Part shown: one piece after another, positions 15,705 through 38,779 of the stretch
Layout of the letters: the number at the start of each line of letters is the position of its first letter
Position numbering within the stretch: the stretch's first letter is position 1
NCBI RefSeq assembly: GCF_016432865.1
Contig: NC_067400.1
Span: forward strand, 612,746,001 to 612,810,000
Length of the DNA: 64,000 nucleotides
Direction: 5' to 3'
Origin: Antechinus flavipes
Lineage: Eukaryota
Made by a program: the position numbers and the translations under genes
The notes under the pieces: generated by a model
Told to the model about the DNA's origin: nothing
Seen by the model: the letters and a program-made list of their open reading frames with translations, nothing else
The model's database searches: none

Positions 15705-18009
15705 TTACAAGTCTTTCAGCACTTCCTGGATCTGAGCCACGACTTTGACCAGTTTGGGCTCATTGAAGTAACCATCCAGAAACCCATCTCCTCCCTGGGA
15801 AAGCAAGAGGAACAGCCTCCTGAAAGCTCCCCCAGATCGGCCTTCCCCGGCCTCAGCCCCCCACCCCCAGCCCTCCCACTGCTTCCGCCGGGAATAAAAA
15901 ATAATCCTAAAAACTCCCATTTAAAATTCGTAAAGCATTTACCCCCTAGCAGCACCGGGGAATTAGTATAGTATCATCTCCGTTTTCCAAATTAGGAAAT
16001 CGAGTCCGGGAGATGTGAAGGGCTTGTCTTGGGTCACGCTTTGTGGCCCAGCTGGAAAGTCAAACCCGCGCCCTTTGACTCCCGAGCCAGAGACTTTCCA
16101 GATCCAGTCTCACCTTTTTAGAATGCACCAGCTTGCCCGCCACAAAGACCTCAAAATCCTCACAGGGCTGGGGTAACTGCTCTTCCACCTAAGTCAGAGA
16201 CGGGGACGGGGCTCAGGGCTGCAGTGCCCCCCCCCCAGCTGCCCGTGGTGTGCCCGACAGACCCCCACCACGGAGGGAAGGGGATGGCCTCCGCCAGCCT
16301 GGGAGGGGTCTACTCACAAAGACAAGGCGTGAGGGGAAAATTTCATTCAGCTGCTTCTTCAGTCTCTTGAACTAGAAATGGGGAAGAGGGATCAGCGGGA
16401 GAGGGGGGGAGCCTCTGCCTCCTCCAAAGGGCCTCAGATAGGATCTTCTTCTCCCCCTCCTCCACTCCCCCCACCCATTTCCCAGGAGAAAACTCACTCA
16501 CCCGAAAATGGTAACTTCAGGAGTTGCTGGAACAGATGCAGAGACAGATTCAAAGACATAAAGGCAGACTCAGACAGGAGAGTCCCCGCGCAAAGATACA
16601 GCCAAGGGGGGCAGAGATGTTCCCCAGGTTGGGGGAGAAGAGACACAGATAGACGGGAAACACCCGAGATGGAGGAGAAAGAAAGAAGAAATAGACATTG
16701 ATAGAANNNNNNNNNNNNNNNNNNNNNNNNNNNNNNNNNNNNNNNNNNNNNNNNNNNNNNNNNNNNNNNNNNNNNNNNNNNNNNNNNNNNNNNNNNNNNN
16801 NNNNNNNNNNNNNNNNNNNNNNNNNNNNNNNNNNNNNNNNNNNNNNNNNNNNNNNNNNNNNNNNNNNNNNNNNNNNNNNNNNNNNNNNNNNNNNNNNNNN
16901 NNNNNNNNNNNNNNNNNNNNNNNNNNNNNNNNNNNNNNNNNNNNNNNNNNNNNNNNNNNNNNNNNNNNNNNNNNNNNNNNNNNNNNNNNNNNNNNNNNNN
17001 NNNGGCAGAGATAAAGTTATCAATAAACAATAAATCAAAAAATCAGACTCATTTATATGTCACCCTTTCCCCCGTTTAATAAATAGAGACCAGTTACTTT
17101 ATAGATTTGCAATCATTATAAATATATTATTGGATTCAACCTTTACAACAACCCAGTGAAGTGTGAAACAGATGCTAGTGTTAAACTCCTCATTCTCAAA
17201 AAGGGGAAACTGAGTCTCTGAGAACTTGTTAACGAGATAGCGTAGGCAGCGAGAGTCGGGAAGGGGATTCCAGCTCCCCACGCTCNNNNNNNNNNNNNNN
17301 NNNNNNNNNNNNNNNNNNNNNNNNNNNNNNNNNNNNNNNNNNNNNNNNNNNNNNNNNNNNNNNNNNNNNNNNNNNNNNNNNNNNNNNNNNNNNNNNNNNN
17401 NNNNNNNNNNNNNNNNNNNNNNNNNNNNNNNNNNNNNNNNNNNNNNNNNNNNNNNNNNNNNNNNNNNNNNNNNNNNNNNNNNNNNNNNNNNNNNNNNNNN
17501 NNNNNNNNNNNNNNNNNNNNNNNNNNNNNNNNNNNNNNNNNNNNNNNNNNNNNNNNNNNNNNNNNNNNNNNNNNNNNNNNNNNNNNNNNNNNNNNNNNNN
17601 NNNNNNNNNNNNNNNNNNNNNNNNNNNNNNNNNNNNNNNNNNNNNNNNGAATCCCAGCCCCGGCCGGCGAGCCAAGCGCGCCCGCACCCGTCCCTGCCCG
17701 GAGAAAGTCCCTCCTGACCCGGGACTGGAACTTTGCCTCGCGCTGAGCCCCGGGTGGGGACCCTGAGGCAGAGAGAGGAATAAGGAGCGCGGGGGAGTCC
17801 GAGAGAGGGGCCAAGGGCTCTAGCGCATCTTCCTCCGCCCCGCGGGACACGGGGAGCCCCCTGCGCCTGCCCGCAGTTCGGCCCCCGGCTGGGAGGCGGG
17901 GCCGGAGCCTCGTTTACCCGAAAGCCACCCGGATCTGGATTTGAGCGAGCGGTTCGGGTTCGCTGAGGGGGGGGCCCGGGCCTCCGGGCTTGCAGGGATC
18001 GGTTTCCAT
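15705..18009 (-). CDS. SELENOV: SELENOV/SELENOW-family (Rdx thioredoxin-like) selenoprotein, 5 coding exons, 111 aa (143 aa if the in-frame ATG at 18105 is used)
   Basis: Exons 18009-17918 (92 nt, gccATGG start), 16526-16502 (25 nt, in-frame TGA at 16519-16517), 16371-16318 (54), 16188-16114 (75), 15794-15705 (90, TAA). All GT-AG with compatible phases; 25/54/75 are the SELENOW/V internal exon sizes. Protein: METDPCKPGGPGPPLSEPEPLAQIQIRVAFGNSUSYHFRFKRLKKQLNEIFPSRLVFVEEQLPQPCEDFEVFVAGKLVHSKKGGDGFLDGYFNEPKLVKVVAQIQEVLKDL. USYxxR, FEVFVxGxLVHSKK and GDGF are SELENOV-like, and the position 3' of DLL3 on the same strand matches human SELENOV. Exon 1 is less certain because two gaps lie in intron 1. 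Confidence 0.88.
16707..17003. other. Assembly gap (N run)
   Basis: 297 N. Confidence 1.
17286..17648. other. Assembly gap (N run)
   Basis: 363 N. Confidence 1.
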
Positions 18010-18340: not shown

Positions 18341-19454
18341 GATGCCCTTCTACAGTATTACTTTGACTCAGGACTCCCCCTCCCCCAATTCTCTGTGTTC
18401 TCTATCTCTCTCGGTATCAGTCTTTCTCTCTCTCTCGGTGTCTCTGTCTCTGTCTGTATCTTTGCCTCTCTCATTTCCCTCCTCCAAGATGGTCTCAGAA
18501 TCCCCAATCTCCAAACAGCAGCTAGGCAGAGGAGGGAGAAGGGATTAAAGACTGTGGAAGCTGGGAATGGCAAAGGATTTTTAAGGATATTTCATAAGAA
18601 CCCTATAAAACCATTTATTATTATTAGAATCCAAATGAATCCTCTCTTCCTCAAACCTGGATGCAGCCATTGGAGGAGGGGAGTTTTGGACCCTTGGAGC
18701 CCAAACTAGAACCCAAGCTTTCTGGAAAGACTGGAGATGAGGAATAAAGGAAGCATCAGGGGAAGTGGGGGGAACTTTTAGCAGATGGCCTGTTCTCCCT
18801 CCATGTCTGGGTGGTCCTGCCTCAAACCCCCTTGCATAGAGCTACAGTCAGTGTCAGGGGCTGAAGAAAACCTCAGGCCCGCTTTCTGGCCTCCTGCCTT
18901 TGGCCCACCTTTTCCAGGACGCTGCCGCCCCACACCCCCCGAGATTCTCCAGAACCAGTGTGGCGGCAAGGGGATGGTGTTGGGATTTCTAAATCTTCTG
19001 TCCCCCTTTCTCCCATTTCCCACTGAGTGCCATTAGTCTCCACCTCTCCCAAGCCCGGACCGAGAAGTCTGCCCTAGCGGGATCCTGGGGCCACGACCAA
19101 TAAATAAATACTGAGTAGAATAAAAATCATTCACATATGAATCCGGAGAGATGAGGAAGGGGAACTGTTGTAAATATTCTTTTTACACAAGTCAGAGCGG
19201 GAGGTGAGGTCCTTGACTCCCCCCAATCCAGAACTCCTGAGTTGATCGGGAAGAGGCGCCCCGAAGTGGGCTATCAGGGCAGCTCCCTTTCTCCAGGTGA
19301 CTTTTCCTGCCTGCTGCAGGCCTCGGTTTCCTCCTCCCTTGAGTGTGCCGGGAGGAAGAGGGGAAATGTCTGCACAAACAGCAGCAGCGGAATAAATATG
19401 TTAATGTCTCTGTCTACGAGGAATCTTGAGTGTGAAGTCCATGGAAAGGTTGAG

Positions 19455-22400
19455 TCAGACCTAGAACAAAATGAGAAGCCTGGAGCGGTCGTGGAGGAGA
19501 CCCCGGCTTGTGTCCTCCCCCTCCTGAACCACCCATTTTCCAAAGGAGGAGAAAAAGAGCTTCAGCCTTTTCCCCTTCTTCCCCCGCCCCAGACAAGTAA
19601 AAGGGGGAAACCAGAGGCTGAGGGCAGCTAGGAGAGAATCGGAGGGTGGAGTCTCGAAGGGAGGGAAATGGGAGGACACTGACCTCTCTGCCACAGAGGG
19701 AGCAGTCTGGGATGACGTAAATGGGTCGGGGATCTCTGTCCTCGGGAAAGCACCAATCTTCAGCCCTGACGGGGAAGAAAATGGGGTTGGAGGGAGGAGG
19801 GCCCCAGGCTCACCCCGCGACTGAGAAGGCGCCCTCAGAAATTGTGGGATAACTCCCTGGAAGCTCGAAGGGGCCCTTCAAGCCCCGGATCCACTTCCTC
19901 CTAACCCCGCAAGCCTTTTCTTTCCCCTAATCCTCTAACCCGATGCCCAGCTGTTCCCCGGCCCAGCAAAGAAACCCGACGGGAGAACTAAGCGATGGGC
20001 CCCGCCCCACCCGTCCGAGAGAATGGGCGGAAGGGGAGAAGACTTAGTCACCTCATCCCCGACGGGTACTCCAGCAGTCGCTGCGTCCGCTCGCACTTGG
20101 GCGCTTTCAAGTTGCCGGGACCCTGAAAAAGGGGCGCCGAGGAGCCGCCGTCGTGAGCCCGGAGATTGTTGAGTGCGTCCGCTGGAGGCGGGGGTGGCGG
20201 GACGGGGTCCGGGGAGGAAGGAAGGGGCCGCGCCCCCGGACTCCGCCGCCGGGCCCGGGCTCTGACCAGGAGGGCGGCGCCTCCCGCCACGATAGCCAGC
20301 AGTAGCACCAGAGCGAAGGGAAGCCCCAAGGCGGGGGGCAGGGGCACGTGCCTGCGTCGGGCCGCCTCTGGGGGCCCGTGGTGGGGTCCGGGCGGGGGCG
20401 GGGCGGGAGCAGGCGGGAGCTCCGAGCCCTCTCCGTCCGCCGGTCCGGGATTCACGGGGAACTCACAGCGCGCGCCCATGTAGCCCGGCGCACAGGAGCA
20501 GACGTGGCCGGAGAAGTGCGCGTAGCAGCGGCCACCGTGCGCGCAAGGCTGGGGATCGCAGGGGTCTGCGCGCTCCCGACAGTCGCGGCCCCCAAAGCCC
20601 AGCGTGCACGAGCAGCGGAAGCTGTGCGCGCCGTCCACGCACGTGCCCCCGTTGGCGCAGGGCCGTCCGGCGCAGTCGTCCAGGTCGCGCTCACAGCGCG
20701 GGCCCCCGTAGCCGGGCCTGCACCGGCACAGCACGGCCCGGCCCAGGTCCAGGCAAACGCCACCTGCCAGGGAAAAAGCCCCGCGCGTCACGGCCCCTGC
20801 TCGGCCCGGCGGAGCCTCCTCAGCCCGGCCGTCCCTTAGGGCGCCACGCTGGAGAAGCCCAGATCTCACACCGGGAGACTGGGATCCGAGTGGGAGAGAC
20901 CTCCGAGGGCGCGCGGTCCCTTCTCCTCAGCATGATTTTCTCTTCCAGATCCCGTCCCTCTCTGCCCTCCTTTCCCGCCTCCAGCTACGCCCCCTCGATC
21001 CCCCGTCGCTGCTCACGGCTTGGTCTTCCCCAACCCTGCTCTCCCTCTCCCTCCTCTTGGCTCCCCAATAAAGGAAAGAGCGAAGGACTCTGGTTTCTAG
21101 GTCCTTCTGCCGCTGCCCCTGGCCTCCTGGTCCCTTTGCCCCAGACCTCCCGCCCACGGCGCAATGGGAAGATTTGAAGGGCCTGGATTCGAGTCCAAAC
21201 CACCCCTGACCTTCGGAAACTGACTCAACTCAAGCTCTCGGGGCCTGTTTTTTCCCTCTGACTTCTCATGGGACCAAATCGTTTCCAGTTTTAAGCCTAT
21301 CTATCACCCAGGTATCTTTGGGCCTCAGTTTCCACTTTATTAGACGAGAGTAATGGGCTGCACCATCTTGAAGACTCACCGTTGCGACAAGGCTGGAGGC
21401 TGCAGCGATCCATCTTCTTCTCACAGTTGGACCCATGGAAGCCTGGTGGGCAGCGGCAGGTGTAACCAGCAGGGGTTCCGCCATCCACACAGGTGCCCCC
21501 ATTGAAGCAGGGCCCATCAGCGCACGTCATCCCGATGACCTCACATCGTTTCCCATAGAAGCCCCGTGGACATGTACATTCGAAGTCCCCGGCCACCTCC
21601 TGGAAGCGGAAGGGGTGGGGGTGAAATCTTGGCCCTGCTACCTATTATTATCTTCCCTCTTCTGAGTCTCAGTTTCCTCATCTGTAAAATGAGGGGACTG
21701 AATAGATCCCTAATTGATCCCTTGTCCATTGCCCACCCAAGGGCATCTCCCTGTTTCCCTCCCGTCCTCCTTCATTCATCTTCCACATTTCTACCAGAAA
21801 AATCTTCCTAAAGCACAGCTCTGGTACTGAATGGCTCTTCTCTGCTCAGAAAACTTCAGGGACTTCCTCTTGCCTCTAGGATAACTCCTCAACCTGGCAC
21901 TTCCCTCTCTTCCTAAGCTGAGATGCTGCTCCTTGAGGCATCTTTCTAAATATTTCCTTTTATGGAGTTTCCTTCTAGATGCTGCCCTTCATGGTATCTT
22001 TCTAGATACTTAAGAAATTCGGGACTCAAAACCAACTGAACTTGTGACTTTTCCCTAAACTCGAAGTCGCATCCCACCTCCACCTGGGAATTCGCTTCCG
22101 ATTCTCACCTCTCCAGGTCTGTCTTGTCTTCTGTCAAGTCTCAGCTGAGGTATTGCCAGCTGCTTTAAATCCTCCCCAGCCCACTTCCCACTCCCCTTCC
22201 TTGCTAGTGCTTCCCTCCTGCTCCACCTCTCTCCAGGTGACTTATTCCTATACCTTTTCCCTCCCGTGTAAACCCCTCAAGGGACTTTAATTTTTGTCTT
22301 TGTCTTCCCAGAGCATAGCACAGTGACCTGCATCCTGTGGGTGCTCACAGTGACTTGGATCCTGTGGGTGCTGAATTAAACTGAGTCTAAGCACCATTCC

Positions 22401-25400
22401 TATTCTTAGCCCTGGGATGCCCTACTTGTGTCCTCAGGTTGATTCGTCCAATTTCCCTCCCATTTTATAGATGAGTAAACTGAGACTCAAAGGAAGATGA
22501 AGGAACTCTCCCCCTTTCTCTGGCCCTCAACTCCCAAGGTCTTTCAGTCCTGTTCTCTGAACTTTGCCTCCTGCATATATCCCTTCCTCTCCATGCTCAT
22601 GGCCTTCATCCCAATTCCAAGGCCTGGACCCAGATCCAGCACAATTCTAGATAATCAGAGGACTGAGCGACAATTTGCTGATGGATTGACATCAGGGATC
22701 ATCATGATGACATAAAAAGTGTCCTGGATTCCAGTTAGGCAAACTGGATTCAGGTCCTGATTCTCCCACTAACAGGCAGGTGACCTCTCTGAGCCTCAGT
22801 TTCCCCAGCTGTCAAATGGGAGTACCGATCCATGTAATAGATGGACTGTCAGGAGGCAGGACTTTAAGGTTCCCAAAACACTTTCTGCACGCTGTCCTGT
22901 ATGAAGTATTATCCTTATCCCCATTTAAGAGACAGAGAAGCTAAGGTTGTTAAGGGAAAAGCCACTTGCTATTCACACGGCTAGCAAGTATCAGAGACCA
23001 TATTTGAACTTAGGTGTTCCCGATTAATTCCAGTACGCCGTGCTGTCCCGCACGTTGTAACCTTAATGTTCTCTAAAGCCTCAATTTTAGAGCATATGGG
23101 AAAGGGACACGGGAAGGTCAGAGGGAAGGTCAGAGGTCAGGAGAGCAGGGCTCATACTAACACTGCAGCTGCCACCGTTGGTACACGGGTGCTCGTCGCA
23201 CAGGCCAGCTGGGAAGAGGCACCGGCGGCTGGAGAATCCTGGGAGGTTGGAGCAGGTGGCCCCGTTGGCACATGGCTGGAGGCTGGAGCAGTCGCCGCCG
23301 CTGGGGGCCCGGATGGTGCAGAGGGGGCCGGTCCAGCCTTGGTAGCAGTGGCATTCAGCAGGTCGCTCACAGTAACCGTGCGCAGCGCTGCAGCCTGACT
23401 GACAAACGGCTGGAGGGGGAAAGGGGCCCAGTAGGAAGAGGGAGCAAAAGGAGGGAGGAGGCAGAGGGATGGCCAGAGACAAGAGCGGAAAGGCATGAAG
23501 GTTTGGAGCAGAAATATTGGGCAAGTGGGGGGAGGAGAAAAAGAGAGAATCAGTCTGGGGAGGGGGAAGGGTTAAACCCCAAACTCGAGGTGTTGGGGGC
23601 TGAAAGTCCACATCATTCCGGGGGGGAAAGAGAATAGGGCTTGTCCCTTAGCGGGAGGTAGGGTCCCGGGCCCCGCCCCCTTCCCCTGGTTCGCTCACGC
23701 CGGGCGCACGTGCTCCTCAGCCCGGTGCGCACCCCCCTCCCCCGCCACCGAGCCAGCCCTCTCACTCACGCCGGGCACACATGTCTCCAGTCCAGCCGTC
23801 CATGCAGACGCGCTCCCCGTTGGCGCCGCAATGGAAATGGCCCAGGGGGTCGTCCCGAGGGCGGCACAGGCGGGCACAGGCGGGACCGTAGTAGTGAGGC
23901 TCGCAGCGGACCCGGTAGGAGAAGAGCAGCTCCCAGCCCCCGGCCTGCCGGGCATCCCGGGCCCAGGGTCCGCCCACCGCCAACCTGTGCCGCCCAGCCA
24001 GCCGACTCAGCAGACTCCGATCGGGACCTGCCAGCAGAGGGGCACGGTGACGGGGACCTGCGGCCTCGGCCAGCCCCATCTGTGCCCCGAGGCTGGCCGC
24101 GGGCCTCCCCCCTCGCAGATTTGGGAGCTCTCCAGAACCCAGCCCCTCCCCCCAGAAAGAGTCCCCATAAATCAGCTCCATAAGAAACCTCGAAATAACC
24201 GCCCCGCCCACCTCCCACCTGGAACCCCGTAGTATCAGCCCTGCCCAGTCCCACCATCCTCCCAGCTGCGATTCGAGACCGCAGGGTCCCGGGAGGCTCT
24301 TCGAAGCAGACGCAATCTCTGACCCGGCGGCTTGGAGCCACAGAACTCCCTATTAGGGCGCAGACCTGCCGCCCCCTCCTCCTGCTCGGTCCCTCTCCCA
24401 CAGGGAAACTTCTAGATACCCAGTTCCCCCGCCCCTCGGAGATCGTAGGCCACGCCCCCTATCGAGGCCGGAGGGTCCCTGCCCCGCTCCTTGCTCTTTG
24501 GTCTCCCCCGCCCCCGCCCGCGCGCTCCCCATCCCACCCAAGGGCCTCACCTGGAAGCTTCTCCCCCGACTCTTCCTTGCTCCTGGATTCAAGTTCCTCC
24601 CTCCAGGACTCGATGATTAGCGAGAAAGTCCCCTGGAGGAGAAGGGCAGAAGGGACGGGGGGAGGGGGAGAGAGTGTTAGCAGCGGGGCAAGGGGCATTC
24701 GAGGAGGCGAAAAATGATGGTGTGAGAGAAGGGAGCTTTCCTAGTTAACGGGGAGAGAGGCGTTGGCGCGAGGGGAGAAAGGGTCCCCAAAAGTTTTAAA
24801 AAGAGAGCAGAATGCTGGGGAGACATGAGCCTGAAGGAAGAAGGCGCTGCTTGGGGGAGAGAGGATCTTAGGGTCCCGGGGTCAGCAGCGAGGGTCAGGG
24901 GGGCGCTGACCTGGAAATGGGGAGAAGAGGCTGTGTCTGCTCGTCCCCAAGGAAACAGGAGCCCATGAGGAAAGGAGCCCCGGGACTGGGCAGCGGGGGC
25001 TTCCCGGATACCAATCTATCGGGACAGGGGCCGTTTCTGGCGGGGGGAGGGGGGGGATGAGGAGGGGAGGTTTGGGAATGGAGGTCCCTCAGAGTTTCAG
25101 AATTAGAGTCTGGGGAGGAACGGGGGTCCGTCCTGCAGGACCGCAGCATCTTGGGAGATGGGAGTCTCCGAGTTCTGGGGATGGGCTTCGTCCAGCGTCT
25201 GGGGAAGGCGGCTCCATGGGATGGGAGACCCGGGGAGGACATTCCTGGACACCTGAGGGCGGGACTTCTGTGGAACTGGGCGGGAGGGGGGGACCAGGGG
25301 CGCTGGTGGGAGCTGATATGGAGATCTTTATATGGTGAATGGGGGGGGGAGCGGAATCTAGGTCCTAAGGCTCTTGGGGAGCGGGAATTCTCTCGGTTCA

Positions 25401-25871
25401 GAGGACTCCTCACCGGCCAGGCGGTACGGAAGGGCACACGGATGAGGCCGTCAACCAGGGAGAGCTGCGGTCCGGGATCGGTGGGGTCCTCGGAGTTCGG
25501 GGCCTCCGGAGAAACGAGCGCCGCTCCCAGGACACACGGCAGCTCTGGGCTCCGATCTGGCAGCGCCGGTTTCAGGCAGACACGAAAGACGAGACGGCAG
25601 GAACCCTGAGGGCCACACGGGGAGTTCGGGGTGCCCGGGGACCCTGGGTCGGGCCGGAAAGAGTGGATTTGCAGTTCGAAGACCCCGGCGCAGCGGACCT
25701 TAGGGAGTAACAGAGGGATAAGAGGTCAGAGTCCCAAGAATCCCCCCTTCTGCCCCAGTATCCTGCCAGCTCTTCTCCCCTGGGGCCACCCCATGCCCCC
25801 ACCTTGCAAAGGCAGAGCAGAGAGACCAGCGCGGCCAGGAGCCCGGCGGTCAGCGGCCGCCTCGAGGCCAT
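19455..25871 (-). CDS. DLL3: Delta-like 3 Notch ligand, 9 exons, 653 aa
   Basis: Exons 25871-25803, 25698-25414, 24632-24551, 24027-23770, 23409-23162, 21599-21380, 20763-20052, 19765-19684, 19460-19455 (GTC TGA); total 1962 nt, all GT-AG and in phase. Signal peptide, C2/MNNL ([19 protein letters not shown]), DSL, six complete EGF repeats, TM ([20 protein letters not shown]), DALNNLR and IYVI motifs. Synteny with TIMM50. Confidence 0.95.
22700..23050. mobile_element. MIR fragments in opposite orientations in DLL3 intron 5
   Basis: CTCTGAGCCTCAGTTTCCCCAGCTGTCAAATGGG (plus) and CCCCATTTAAGAGACAGAGAAGCTAAGG (minus). Confidence 0.55.
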
Positions 25872-25907
25872 GGCGCAGGGTCTGGAGGCACCCGAGGCTT
25901 GGAGAGC

Positions 25908-25913
25908 TTTATA
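25908..25913 (-). promoter_or_regulatory. TATA box of DLL3
   Basis: TATAAA on the minus strand, 37 nt upstream of the DLL3 ATG, with a GC box (GGGGCGGGGC) just upstream. Confidence 0.6.
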
Positions 25914-25979
25914 ACTCGAGGCGAGGCCCCGCCCCCAAGGAGACCCCGACCCAGCTCCGGGGGAGGGAGAAATGCGAGT

Positions 25980-26430
25980 GTGAGAGAGACTGAAACAGAG
26001 AGAACAGCGACGGGGGGGGGGGGGGGGACACAGAAGGAGGGAGAGACAGAGAGAGCACAGAGAGGGAGGGACAGAACAGAGAGGGAGGGAGAGACAGAGA
26101 CATAGAGACAGAGAGGAGGGGGACACAGAGGGAGGGGGAGAGAGAGAGAGGACAGAAAGGAAGGGAGAGAGAACACAAGAGAGGGAGGGAGAGACAGAGA
26201 GAGGGAGAGACGGAGGGAGGGAGAAACAGAGCACAGAGAGGGCGGGAGAGAGAGAACACAGGGAGGGAGAAAGAGAGACAGAAAACAGAGAGGGAGGGAG
26301 AAAGACAGAGAGGACAGAGGGAGGGGGAGACGGAGGAGGGAGAAAGACACAGAAAACAGGCAGAGAGGGATGGGGAGACACACACAGAGACAGACAGAGA
26401 TAGAGACAGAGGGAGGGGAGAGACAGCCAG
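25980..26430. repeat. GA-rich low-complexity polypurine tract upstream of the DLL3 TATA box
   Basis: About 450 nt of GAGA/GGGA/CAGA-type units. Confidence 0.85.
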
Positions 26431-27035
26431 AGATGGTCTGGTTGTCTCTCCGTGTAACAGGCGGGTGTACTTGTGGGATCCCTTAGGCTTCGCCAGCTGG
26501 GTTACTGTGGGTTCCCGGGTCTCCCCGGTCATTGCTCCCCGGGTACCCGAGTCTCTGCTTTCGCCCCAAGAGCCCCGGGCCGCGGTTGAGCGGACACCTC
26601 CTCCCTCCTCTCCCTCCTCCCCCCTCCCCTCCTCTCCCTCCTCCCCTTAACGCCGCTGGTGTCCGCAGAGGTGGCAATGTGGGCGTGTTCAAGGGGACCG
26701 CTGGAAGCCGGGGAGAAGGGCCGGGAGAAGAGGGCCCGGGGTGGGCAAGCAGGGGAGAATCGCAACTGGAGGGGAGTGCCCACATCGGAGAGCGCGGGAC
26801 TCTCAGGAACCTGCACCGGTCTTTGTGACCACGTGCGGGACGGGGGGCCTGCGGGTGGGGGTCTGTGCCCGGGGCCCTTTGTCTAGGCGCAGGGAGCAGC
26901 GTTTCCCCCCAACTCCCTCTCCCGGCCTCTCCTCCTCGCTGGGGCAGTCTCTGGGTCTCTCTGGGCAGCGTTGGGGTGGGGGGCAGGGCGGCGCGGAAGG
27001 GAGCAGAGGCAGCCTGTCACCAGGCTGGGGCTTAC

Positions 27036-32484: not shown

Positions 32485-38779
<6,295 letters not shown>

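Follow-up and report, generated by a model that had tools for sequence, protein, structure and literature searches.

A predicted marsupial DLL3 orthologue combines an intact DSL domain with the EGF deletion of therian DLL3

INTRODUCTION

Vertebral segmentation requires DLL3, a Notch ligand that is unable to activate Notch and that serves as a clinical target in small-cell lung cancer. Here we describe a candidate DLL3 gene of the marsupial Antechinus flavipes, which lies on the minus strand of a 64,000-nucleotide stretch of genomic DNA (assembly GCF_016432865.1, contig NC_067400.1, positions 612,746,001 to 612,810,000), referred to below as the window. The gene encodes an intact DSL domain and carries the EGF deletion of placental DLL3.

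Published experiments with DLL3 and with chimeras of DLL1 and DLL3 showed that lesions of DLL3 in the DSL, in EGF1-2 and the spacer, and in the transmembrane and intracellular domains (TM-ICD) each abolish activation on their own (Ladi 2005, PMC2171428; Geffers 2007, PMC2064846). With the N-terminus and DSL of DLL1, DLL3 shows no trans binding to Notch1 and no activation of it (Ladi 2005, PMC2171428; Geffers 2007, PMC2064846). DLL1 carrying EGF1-2 of DLL3, with or without the spacer, is inactive; DLL1 with altered spacing gives no activation; and the ectodomain of DLL1 joined to the TM-ICD of DLL3 has no activity (Geffers 2007, PMC2064846). In the same study DLL1/DLL3 chimeras required the DLL1 DSL in order to be presented at the surface, and mutation of YY or GWxG abolished DLL1 function (Geffers 2007, PMC2064846). 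Activating ligands need a lysine-rich intracellular domain for ubiquitin-dependent endocytosis (Ladi 2005, PMC2171428; Geffers 2007, PMC2064846). EGF1-3 are required for DLL signalling. The face with which the JAG1 DSL binds Notch consists of F199, R201, R203, D205 and F207, and the F207A substitution abolishes binding to Notch-1.

The mouse work left open the order in which the lesions of DLL3 arose and how a DLL3 with only some of them would behave. Our full-text literature search found no publication on this order, nor any on DLL3 of marsupials or monotremes; marsupial DLL3 proteins are probably already present in public databases as automatic predictions.

RESULTS

A DSL domain with its cysteines and motifs in place

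Translation of positions 23777-23905 of the window on the minus strand gave a 43-residue peptide that constitutes a DSL domain; plus-strand translation of the same interval gave nothing meaningful. The gene to which it belongs has eight exons and extends from 25871 to ~19414 on the minus strand; the DSL is part of exon 4, all junctions are GT-AG and the frame is open (Table 1). The predicted protein consists of a signal peptide, the C2/MNNL domain, the DSL, EGF1, a 39-residue spacer, five more EGFs, a transmembrane helix and an intracellular tail.

The six cysteines occupy positions 1, 10, 14, 26, 34 and 43 of the domain, a spacing of 8-3-11-7-8, and the motifs YYG (as HYYG), RPRDD, GH and GWTG were all found. 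The Pfam DSL profile (PF01414) matched at 66.6-66.7 bits (E ~2e-18), compared with a gathering cut-off of 24.2 bits, and 44 of its 46 positions were covered. The human DLL1 structure 4xbm aligned to the domain without a gap (E 2.6e-24), with 25/43 identities counted by hand. Exon 4 also matched structures of fly Delta, rat and human DLL4, and JAG1/2, the DSL being gapless in these alignments as well. The DSL match is far beyond chance. A preliminary description of this DNA had reported the cysteine spacing, the YYG, RPRDD, GH and GWxG motifs and an identity to human DLL1 of about 25/43, and the minus-strand translation, the profile score and the 4xbm alignment bear these statements out.

Orthology and synteny

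The best full-length relatives of the predicted protein came from fish, amphibians and sauropsids and carry the NCBI names delta-like protein C or delta-like protein 3. A maximum-likelihood tree with DLL1-like and DLL4-named proteins as outgroups placed the window protein within the DLL3/DeltaC clade with 99/99 support. Birds grouped with mammals in this tree, most likely through long-branch attraction. The tree without birds had the form (platypus,(window,(bat, cat, mole-rat, marmot))), in which window plus placentals received 100/99 support, and the approximately unbiased (AU) test rejected both platypus plus placentals (p 0.002) and window plus platypus (p 0.013). The placentals sampled were all boreoeutherian (cat, L002; Fukomys, P0296/L001; bat, P0294; marmot). 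The branch leading to the window was 0.2 long and the placental stem 0.6; the path from window to placentals was ~0.9, and the placentals were separated from one another by ~0.1-0.2. A branch within therians and beside these placentals is where a marsupial would be expected. Teleost DeltaB (P0244, P0250, P0266 and P0274) nested in the ray-finned-fish DeltaC clade (100/100), as expected of a teleost duplicate.

The first ~175 nt of exon 4 aligned without gaps to the cat DLL3 exon, and exon 4 contains derived states that are common to the window and the placentals and distinguish them from all non-mammals (GGPWARD, CEP and ACARLCR). A NIF-domain gene lies upstream of DLL3 at the cat locus (L002), in the same order as in the window, and the last exon of that cat gene matched window positions 32485-32634 by tblastx. 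Taken together with the EGF2 deletion described below, the tree, the AU tests, the TIMM50-like synteny and the derived residues support orthology with DLL3; that the gene is a DLL3 orthologue and that its DSL is intact are both very probable. The preliminary description had identified the gene as DLL3 and had named a position outside the DLL3 clade as the result that would speak against it; the tree places the protein inside that clade.

A search of representative proteins with the DSL exon returned mostly DLL1/DLL4-like proteins and multi-DSL invertebrate proteins, the sole DLL3-type match being a placental fragment (P0140). A protein search with the 292-amino-acid stop-free stretch around exon 7 returned partial sequences from placentals, platypus and birds and no marsupial protein. 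A region-restricted search with a turtle query was set aside because proteins with eight EGFs score higher in it than the mammalian type with six. A metagenome scan for host-derived contigs found none.

State of the DSL across lineages

The Pfam DSL score of the window (66.7 bits) is close to those of turtle (69.4), lizard (71.0) and Xenopus (70.8). In contrast, the profile did not match the cat genomic exon (L002:8543-8785) even at E 10, and no match was obtained with Fukomys P0296, the Logan placental fragment P0140 or guineafowl DLL3. Peptides from the placental DSL region contain neither YY nor GWxG, and the rodent DLL3 DSL has likewise been described as degenerate and without these motifs (Ladi 2005, PMC2171428; Geffers 2007, PMC2064846). 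Because the DSL is intact in the window and in non-mammalian orthologues and is not matched in placentals, parsimony places the decay on the placental side. This supports the view that the intact DSL is ancestral and would have decayed after the marsupial-placental split, the timing proposed in the preliminary description. The platypus entry (P0281) is without its N-terminus, which puts the monotreme DSL outside the comparison.

A simple frameshift was considered as a cause of the placental decay; the other frames of the cat exon are unlike the window DSL. The DNA alignment of cat and window exon 4 contains many small indels in its second half and is GC-rich and unreliable.

Bird DLL3 (ostrich, guineafowl and quail; P0289, P0290 and P0291) has no recognisable DSL, is without EGF1-4 and contains only the four membrane-proximal EGFs; its tail is short, lysine-free and ends in ATQV. 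The degeneration of bird DLL3 looks independent of the placental one.

Divergence of the window DSL

Twenty-one of the 43 residues of the window DSL differ from the consensus of the non-mammalian orthologues. These orthologues share 30-40 of the 43 residues among themselves, whereas the window shares 22-24 with any of them. At 22/38 consensus positions, the DSL is no better kept than the other domains of the gene (59-74%); the membrane-proximal four EGFs have kept 74% of non-mammal consensus positions, and ~40% of C2 consensus positions are altered. Over its first 17 residues the window DSL matches cat at 12/17 and the ancestral consensus at 10/17.

The 21 substitutions altered only two of the 20 positions that are invariant in the family (hypergeometric P 1.6e-6), invariance being defined as at least 85% conservation across 243 single-DSL proteins. 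Because so few of these positions have changed, we infer that the DSL skeleton is held by purifying selection and that the variable surface has turned over heavily.

One of the two changes replaces Phe by Leu at the position that corresponds to JAG1 F207. This position is Phe in 215/243 and Leu in 20/243 single-DSL proteins, including teleost DeltaB, and the Leu occurs naturally in catfish DeltaC as well. The other is Tyr to Met, at a position where Tyr is kept in 229 of the 243 proteins (94%). The equivalents of JAG1 R201, R203 and D205 are retained, and that of F199 is Leu, as in DLL4 and in ~21-25% of DSLs. Thus the earlier characterisation of the domain as fully canonical holds for the cysteine skeleton, the motifs and the profile score, but not for the residues that depart from the orthologue consensus, nor for the Leu and Met at these two positions.

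EGF repeats, intracellular domain and C-terminus

In the orthologue alignment, the ancestral EGF2 is wholly absent from the window protein and EGF3 is cut to a relic. Both repeats are kept in turtle, lizard, snake, caecilian, Xenopus, coelacanth and smelt. Placentals have the same EGF2 deletion, with a spacer that is more decayed than that of the window. The partial platypus protein P0281 appears to skip parts of two later EGFs, and this model probably reflects imperfect annotation; it retains the ancestral EGF2 and EGF3. Because platypus keeps both repeats, their loss dates to after the monotreme split.

The intracellular domain of the window protein contains two lysines, compared with none in cat and bat, 9-16 in non-mammals and 15 in a DLL1-like protein. 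Both belong to a relic of the ancestral lysine-rich segment that is deleted in placentals. The ancestral ATEV aligns to GREV, which has no stop after it in the window and is apparently non-terminal. The O-fucose consensus sites in EGF2 and EGF5 (DLL3 numbering), which are required for mouse DLL3 function, are present and are also ancestral. When the protein was compared with Delta-type activating ligands, neither an intact EGF1-3 with native spacing nor a lysine-rich tail was found. Like mouse, rat and human DLL3, it has six EGFs, the first two of which are separated by a spacer.

Gene model and flanking sequence

Pfam MNNL matched exon 2 alone at 25.2 bits (cut-off 22.5), and Pfam EGF_DL_JAG matched exon 5 at 28.6 bits. 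No N runs were found within the DLL3 gene. Exon 4 is 258 nt long and runs from phase 1 to phase 1, so skipping it would preserve the frame and give a DSL-less protein. All or most of exon 4 is skipped in the placental models cat P0280, P0295 and bat P0294, either through alternative splicing or through failure of prediction on a degenerate exon.

The gene model is least certain at its 3′ end. After GREV the frame remains open for 88 more codons (19414-19680, minus strand), the first of which encode residues loosely like the cat read-through tail EVATHLYPL; a cat-like terminal micro-exon was not found. From this comparison, the stop that ancestrally followed ATEV appears to have been lost before marsupials and placentals separated.

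Just upstream of the DLL3 start, positions 25900-26530 form a long CT/GA-rich low-complexity tract whose open reading frames on both strands translate to stretches of L/S/P or of E/R/G; one possibility is a promoter-proximal polypurine/polypyrimidine tract. Two N runs downstream of DLL3, at ~16700-17000 and 17230-17650, are assembly gaps or masked sequence.

Table 1. Positions in the window of the predicted DLL3 exons, of domains within them and of the upstream neighbour
Feature	Position	Strand	Evidence
Exon 1: ATG and signal peptide, 23 codons	25803..25871	-	ATG at 25871; GT donor after 25803; hydrophobic, leader-like
Exon 2: first part of N-terminal C2/MNNL	25414..25698	-	AG/GT sites; tblastn match to fish DeltaC
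Exon 3: C2 linker	24551..24632	-	AG/GT, phase 0 to phase 1; aligns to GTFSLIIE of all orthologues
Exon 4: end of C2 and DSL	23770..24027	-	AG acceptor; strong GTGAGT donor
DSL domain, model residues 187-229	23777..23905	-	Pfam; structure match
Exon 5: EGF1 (23318-23404), relic of ancestral EGF2-3, start of next EGF with O-fucose consensus CTNGGSC	23162..23409	-	
39-residue spacer: ancestral EGF2 deleted, EGF3 relic	23201..23317	-	Orthologue alignment
Exon 6: end of DLL3 EGF2, EGF3, start of EGF4	21380..21599	-	70% identity to fish DeltaC; Pfam EGF; splice sites
Exon 7: EGF4-6, transmembrane helix (20264-20323), most of intracellular domain	20052..20763	-	
Intracellular relic, 21 residues, with both lysines of the intracellular domain	20066..20128	-	Intracellular domain alignment; lysine counts
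Exon 8: EDWCFPED...PIYVIPD...GREV (19681-19725), then read-through to stop at 19414-19416	19414..19765	-	
NIF-domain exon of TIMM50-like upstream neighbour	32952..33713	-	Pfam NIF, 58.3 bits; same strand as DLL3

DISCUSSION

We favour, with reasonable though far from complete confidence, the interpretation that the window DLL3 is an evolutionary intermediate whose C2-DSL still contacts Notch, and that it acts mainly as a cis modulator or inhibitor rather than as an efficient trans-activator. A DeltaC-type activating ligand would have given rise to the non-activating DLL3 of placentals in two steps, and the window gene would represent the stage between them. Tail decay and loss of EGF2-3 would have taken place by the therian stem, before the marsupial-placental split; DSL decay, with more decay of the tail and spacer, would have followed on the placental stem. 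The C2-DSL module of the window protein probably still engages Notch, and the protein would modulate or inhibit it in the manner of DLL3, for the most part in cis; its delivery to the surface is perhaps better than that of mouse DLL3. Efficient trans-activation appears improbable because the protein has neither the EGF1-3 geometry nor a ubiquitin-acceptor tail.

Several points weigh against this interpretation. Long retention of the DSL skeleton implies that some function depends on the DSL, and trans binding is possible. Because teleost DeltaB and catfish DeltaC carry Leu at the F207 equivalent, this residue would not be disabling by itself. The chimera data were obtained with mouse and rat DLL3 parts, and the EGF3 relic of the window is less decayed than that of placentals. 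Two lysines and the NNL motif persist in the tail. Sampling of placentals was confined to boreoeutherians and the marsupial side consisted of one sequence. Finally, the model of exons 7 and 8 and of the 3′ end is uncertain, being predicted from genomic sequence alone.

The first alternative is that the canonical DSL belongs to a genuine trans-binding and trans-activating Notch ligand like DeltaC or X-Delta-2, so that loss of signalling would be specific to placentals. A DSL score as high as those of signalling-type orthologues, YY and GWxG, and the conserved R201, R203 and D205 equivalents are what such a ligand would be expected to have; the Leu at the F207 equivalent is found in teleost DeltaB too, the skeleton appears to be under selection, and the NNL motif and two intracellular lysines remain. 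We nevertheless consider this unlikely, given that the ancestral EGF2 is deleted and EGF3 truncated, that the tail has two lysines rather than 9-16 and is apparently without a terminal PDZ motif, that 21/43 DSL residues and ~40% of C2 consensus positions have changed, and that DLL1/DLL3 chimeras with the DLL1 DSL, with DLL3 EGF1-2 or with the DLL3 TM-ICD were inactive. The suggestion in the preliminary description that the protein may still bind Notch in trans appears weak in view of the EGF2/EGF3 lesion, the two intracellular lysines, the apparently non-terminal position of the ATEV equivalent and the inactive chimeras. A surface-exposed marsupial DLL3 that binds Notch in trans, even one that activates weakly, would be a surprise to us. 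If it did exist, DLL3 would have lost its trans activity completely only in placentals, and its role in marsupial somitogenesis would be a DeltaC-like coupling from cell to cell.

A second alternative, to which we give somewhat less credence still, is that the DSL has been kept for folding, exit from the endoplasmic reticulum (ER), surface or Golgi trafficking, or another partner, in a protein that is functionally equal to placental DLL3. The chimeras needed the DLL1 DSL to be presented at the surface, selection is concentrated on the Cys, Gly and motif skeleton with the surface changing freely, and of the two conserved positions that changed, one is on the Notch-binding face. However, the R-x-R-D-D residues of that face are exactly kept, and placentals and birds are without the DSL, so it is not needed to fold the remainder of the protein. 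That the gene is a DLL1/DLL4-type paralogue, or a decaying pseudogene with an accidentally open frame, is highly improbable: the DSL is as near to DLL1 (25/43) as to its own orthologues (22-24/43) and the gene is known from genomic sequence alone, but the tree, the AU tests, the synteny and the EGF deletion and residues in common with placental DLL3 contradict this explanation, as do eight open exons with canonical splice sites, non-random substitutions and retained O-fucose sites.

Several known ligands resemble the window DLL3 in part. The DSLs of DLL1 and DLL4 (4xbm, 4xl1 and 5mvx) align to it without gaps (E 1e-19 to 3e-24), and DLL4 shares the Leu at the F199 equivalent. Unlike the window protein, these other paralogues have eight EGFs, a tail rich in lysine and, at the F207 equivalent, Phe. 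Non-mammalian DLL3, that is, the DeltaC/X-Delta-2 group (turtle P0162, lizard P0166, Xenopus P0199, coelacanth P0176 and fish DeltaC P0114), has the same cysteine spacing and motifs as the window, the C2 domain and the four membrane-proximal EGFs, but differs in having eight EGFs, 9-16 intracellular lysines and a terminal ATEV.

Placental DLL3 is the sister of the window protein in the tree and has the same upstream neighbour, six EGFs with a spacer, the derived residues of exon 4, O-fucose sites in EGF2 and EGF5, and the NNL and IYVI tail motifs; it has no terminal ATEV, and the predicted window protein appears to have none either. The two differ in the DSL, which in placentals is without YY and GWxG and has no Pfam match, compared with 66.7 bits in the window. 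In addition, the window retains a recognisable EGF3 relic and a 21-residue tail segment with two lysines, whereas the placental tail is shorter and has none, and the window branch is about three times shorter than the placental one. In the full-text literature that was searched, we found no description of a DLL3 that has an intact DSL together with the therian EGF deletion. The gene suggests an order for the lesions, in which EGF2 loss and tail decay came first and the DSL decayed after the marsupial-placental split.

The closest experimental counterparts are chimeras D1NT-D3 (Ladi 2005, PMC2171428) and construct A (Geffers 2007, PMC2064846), in which, as in the window, a canonical DSL is placed on DLL3-type EGF1, spacer and EGF2 and a lysine-poor tail. 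By this analogy, the window gene is in effect a natural version of the DLL1-DSL/DLL3 chimeras. It differs from them in that their C2-DSL comes from DLL1 and is not diverged, and in that its own relic EGF3 and tail are less decayed than those of mouse DLL3. As a natural protein, tried out by evolution, in which the DSL lesion is separated from the others, it opens a direct way to test whether binding is in cis or in trans and what the DSL contributes to trafficking.

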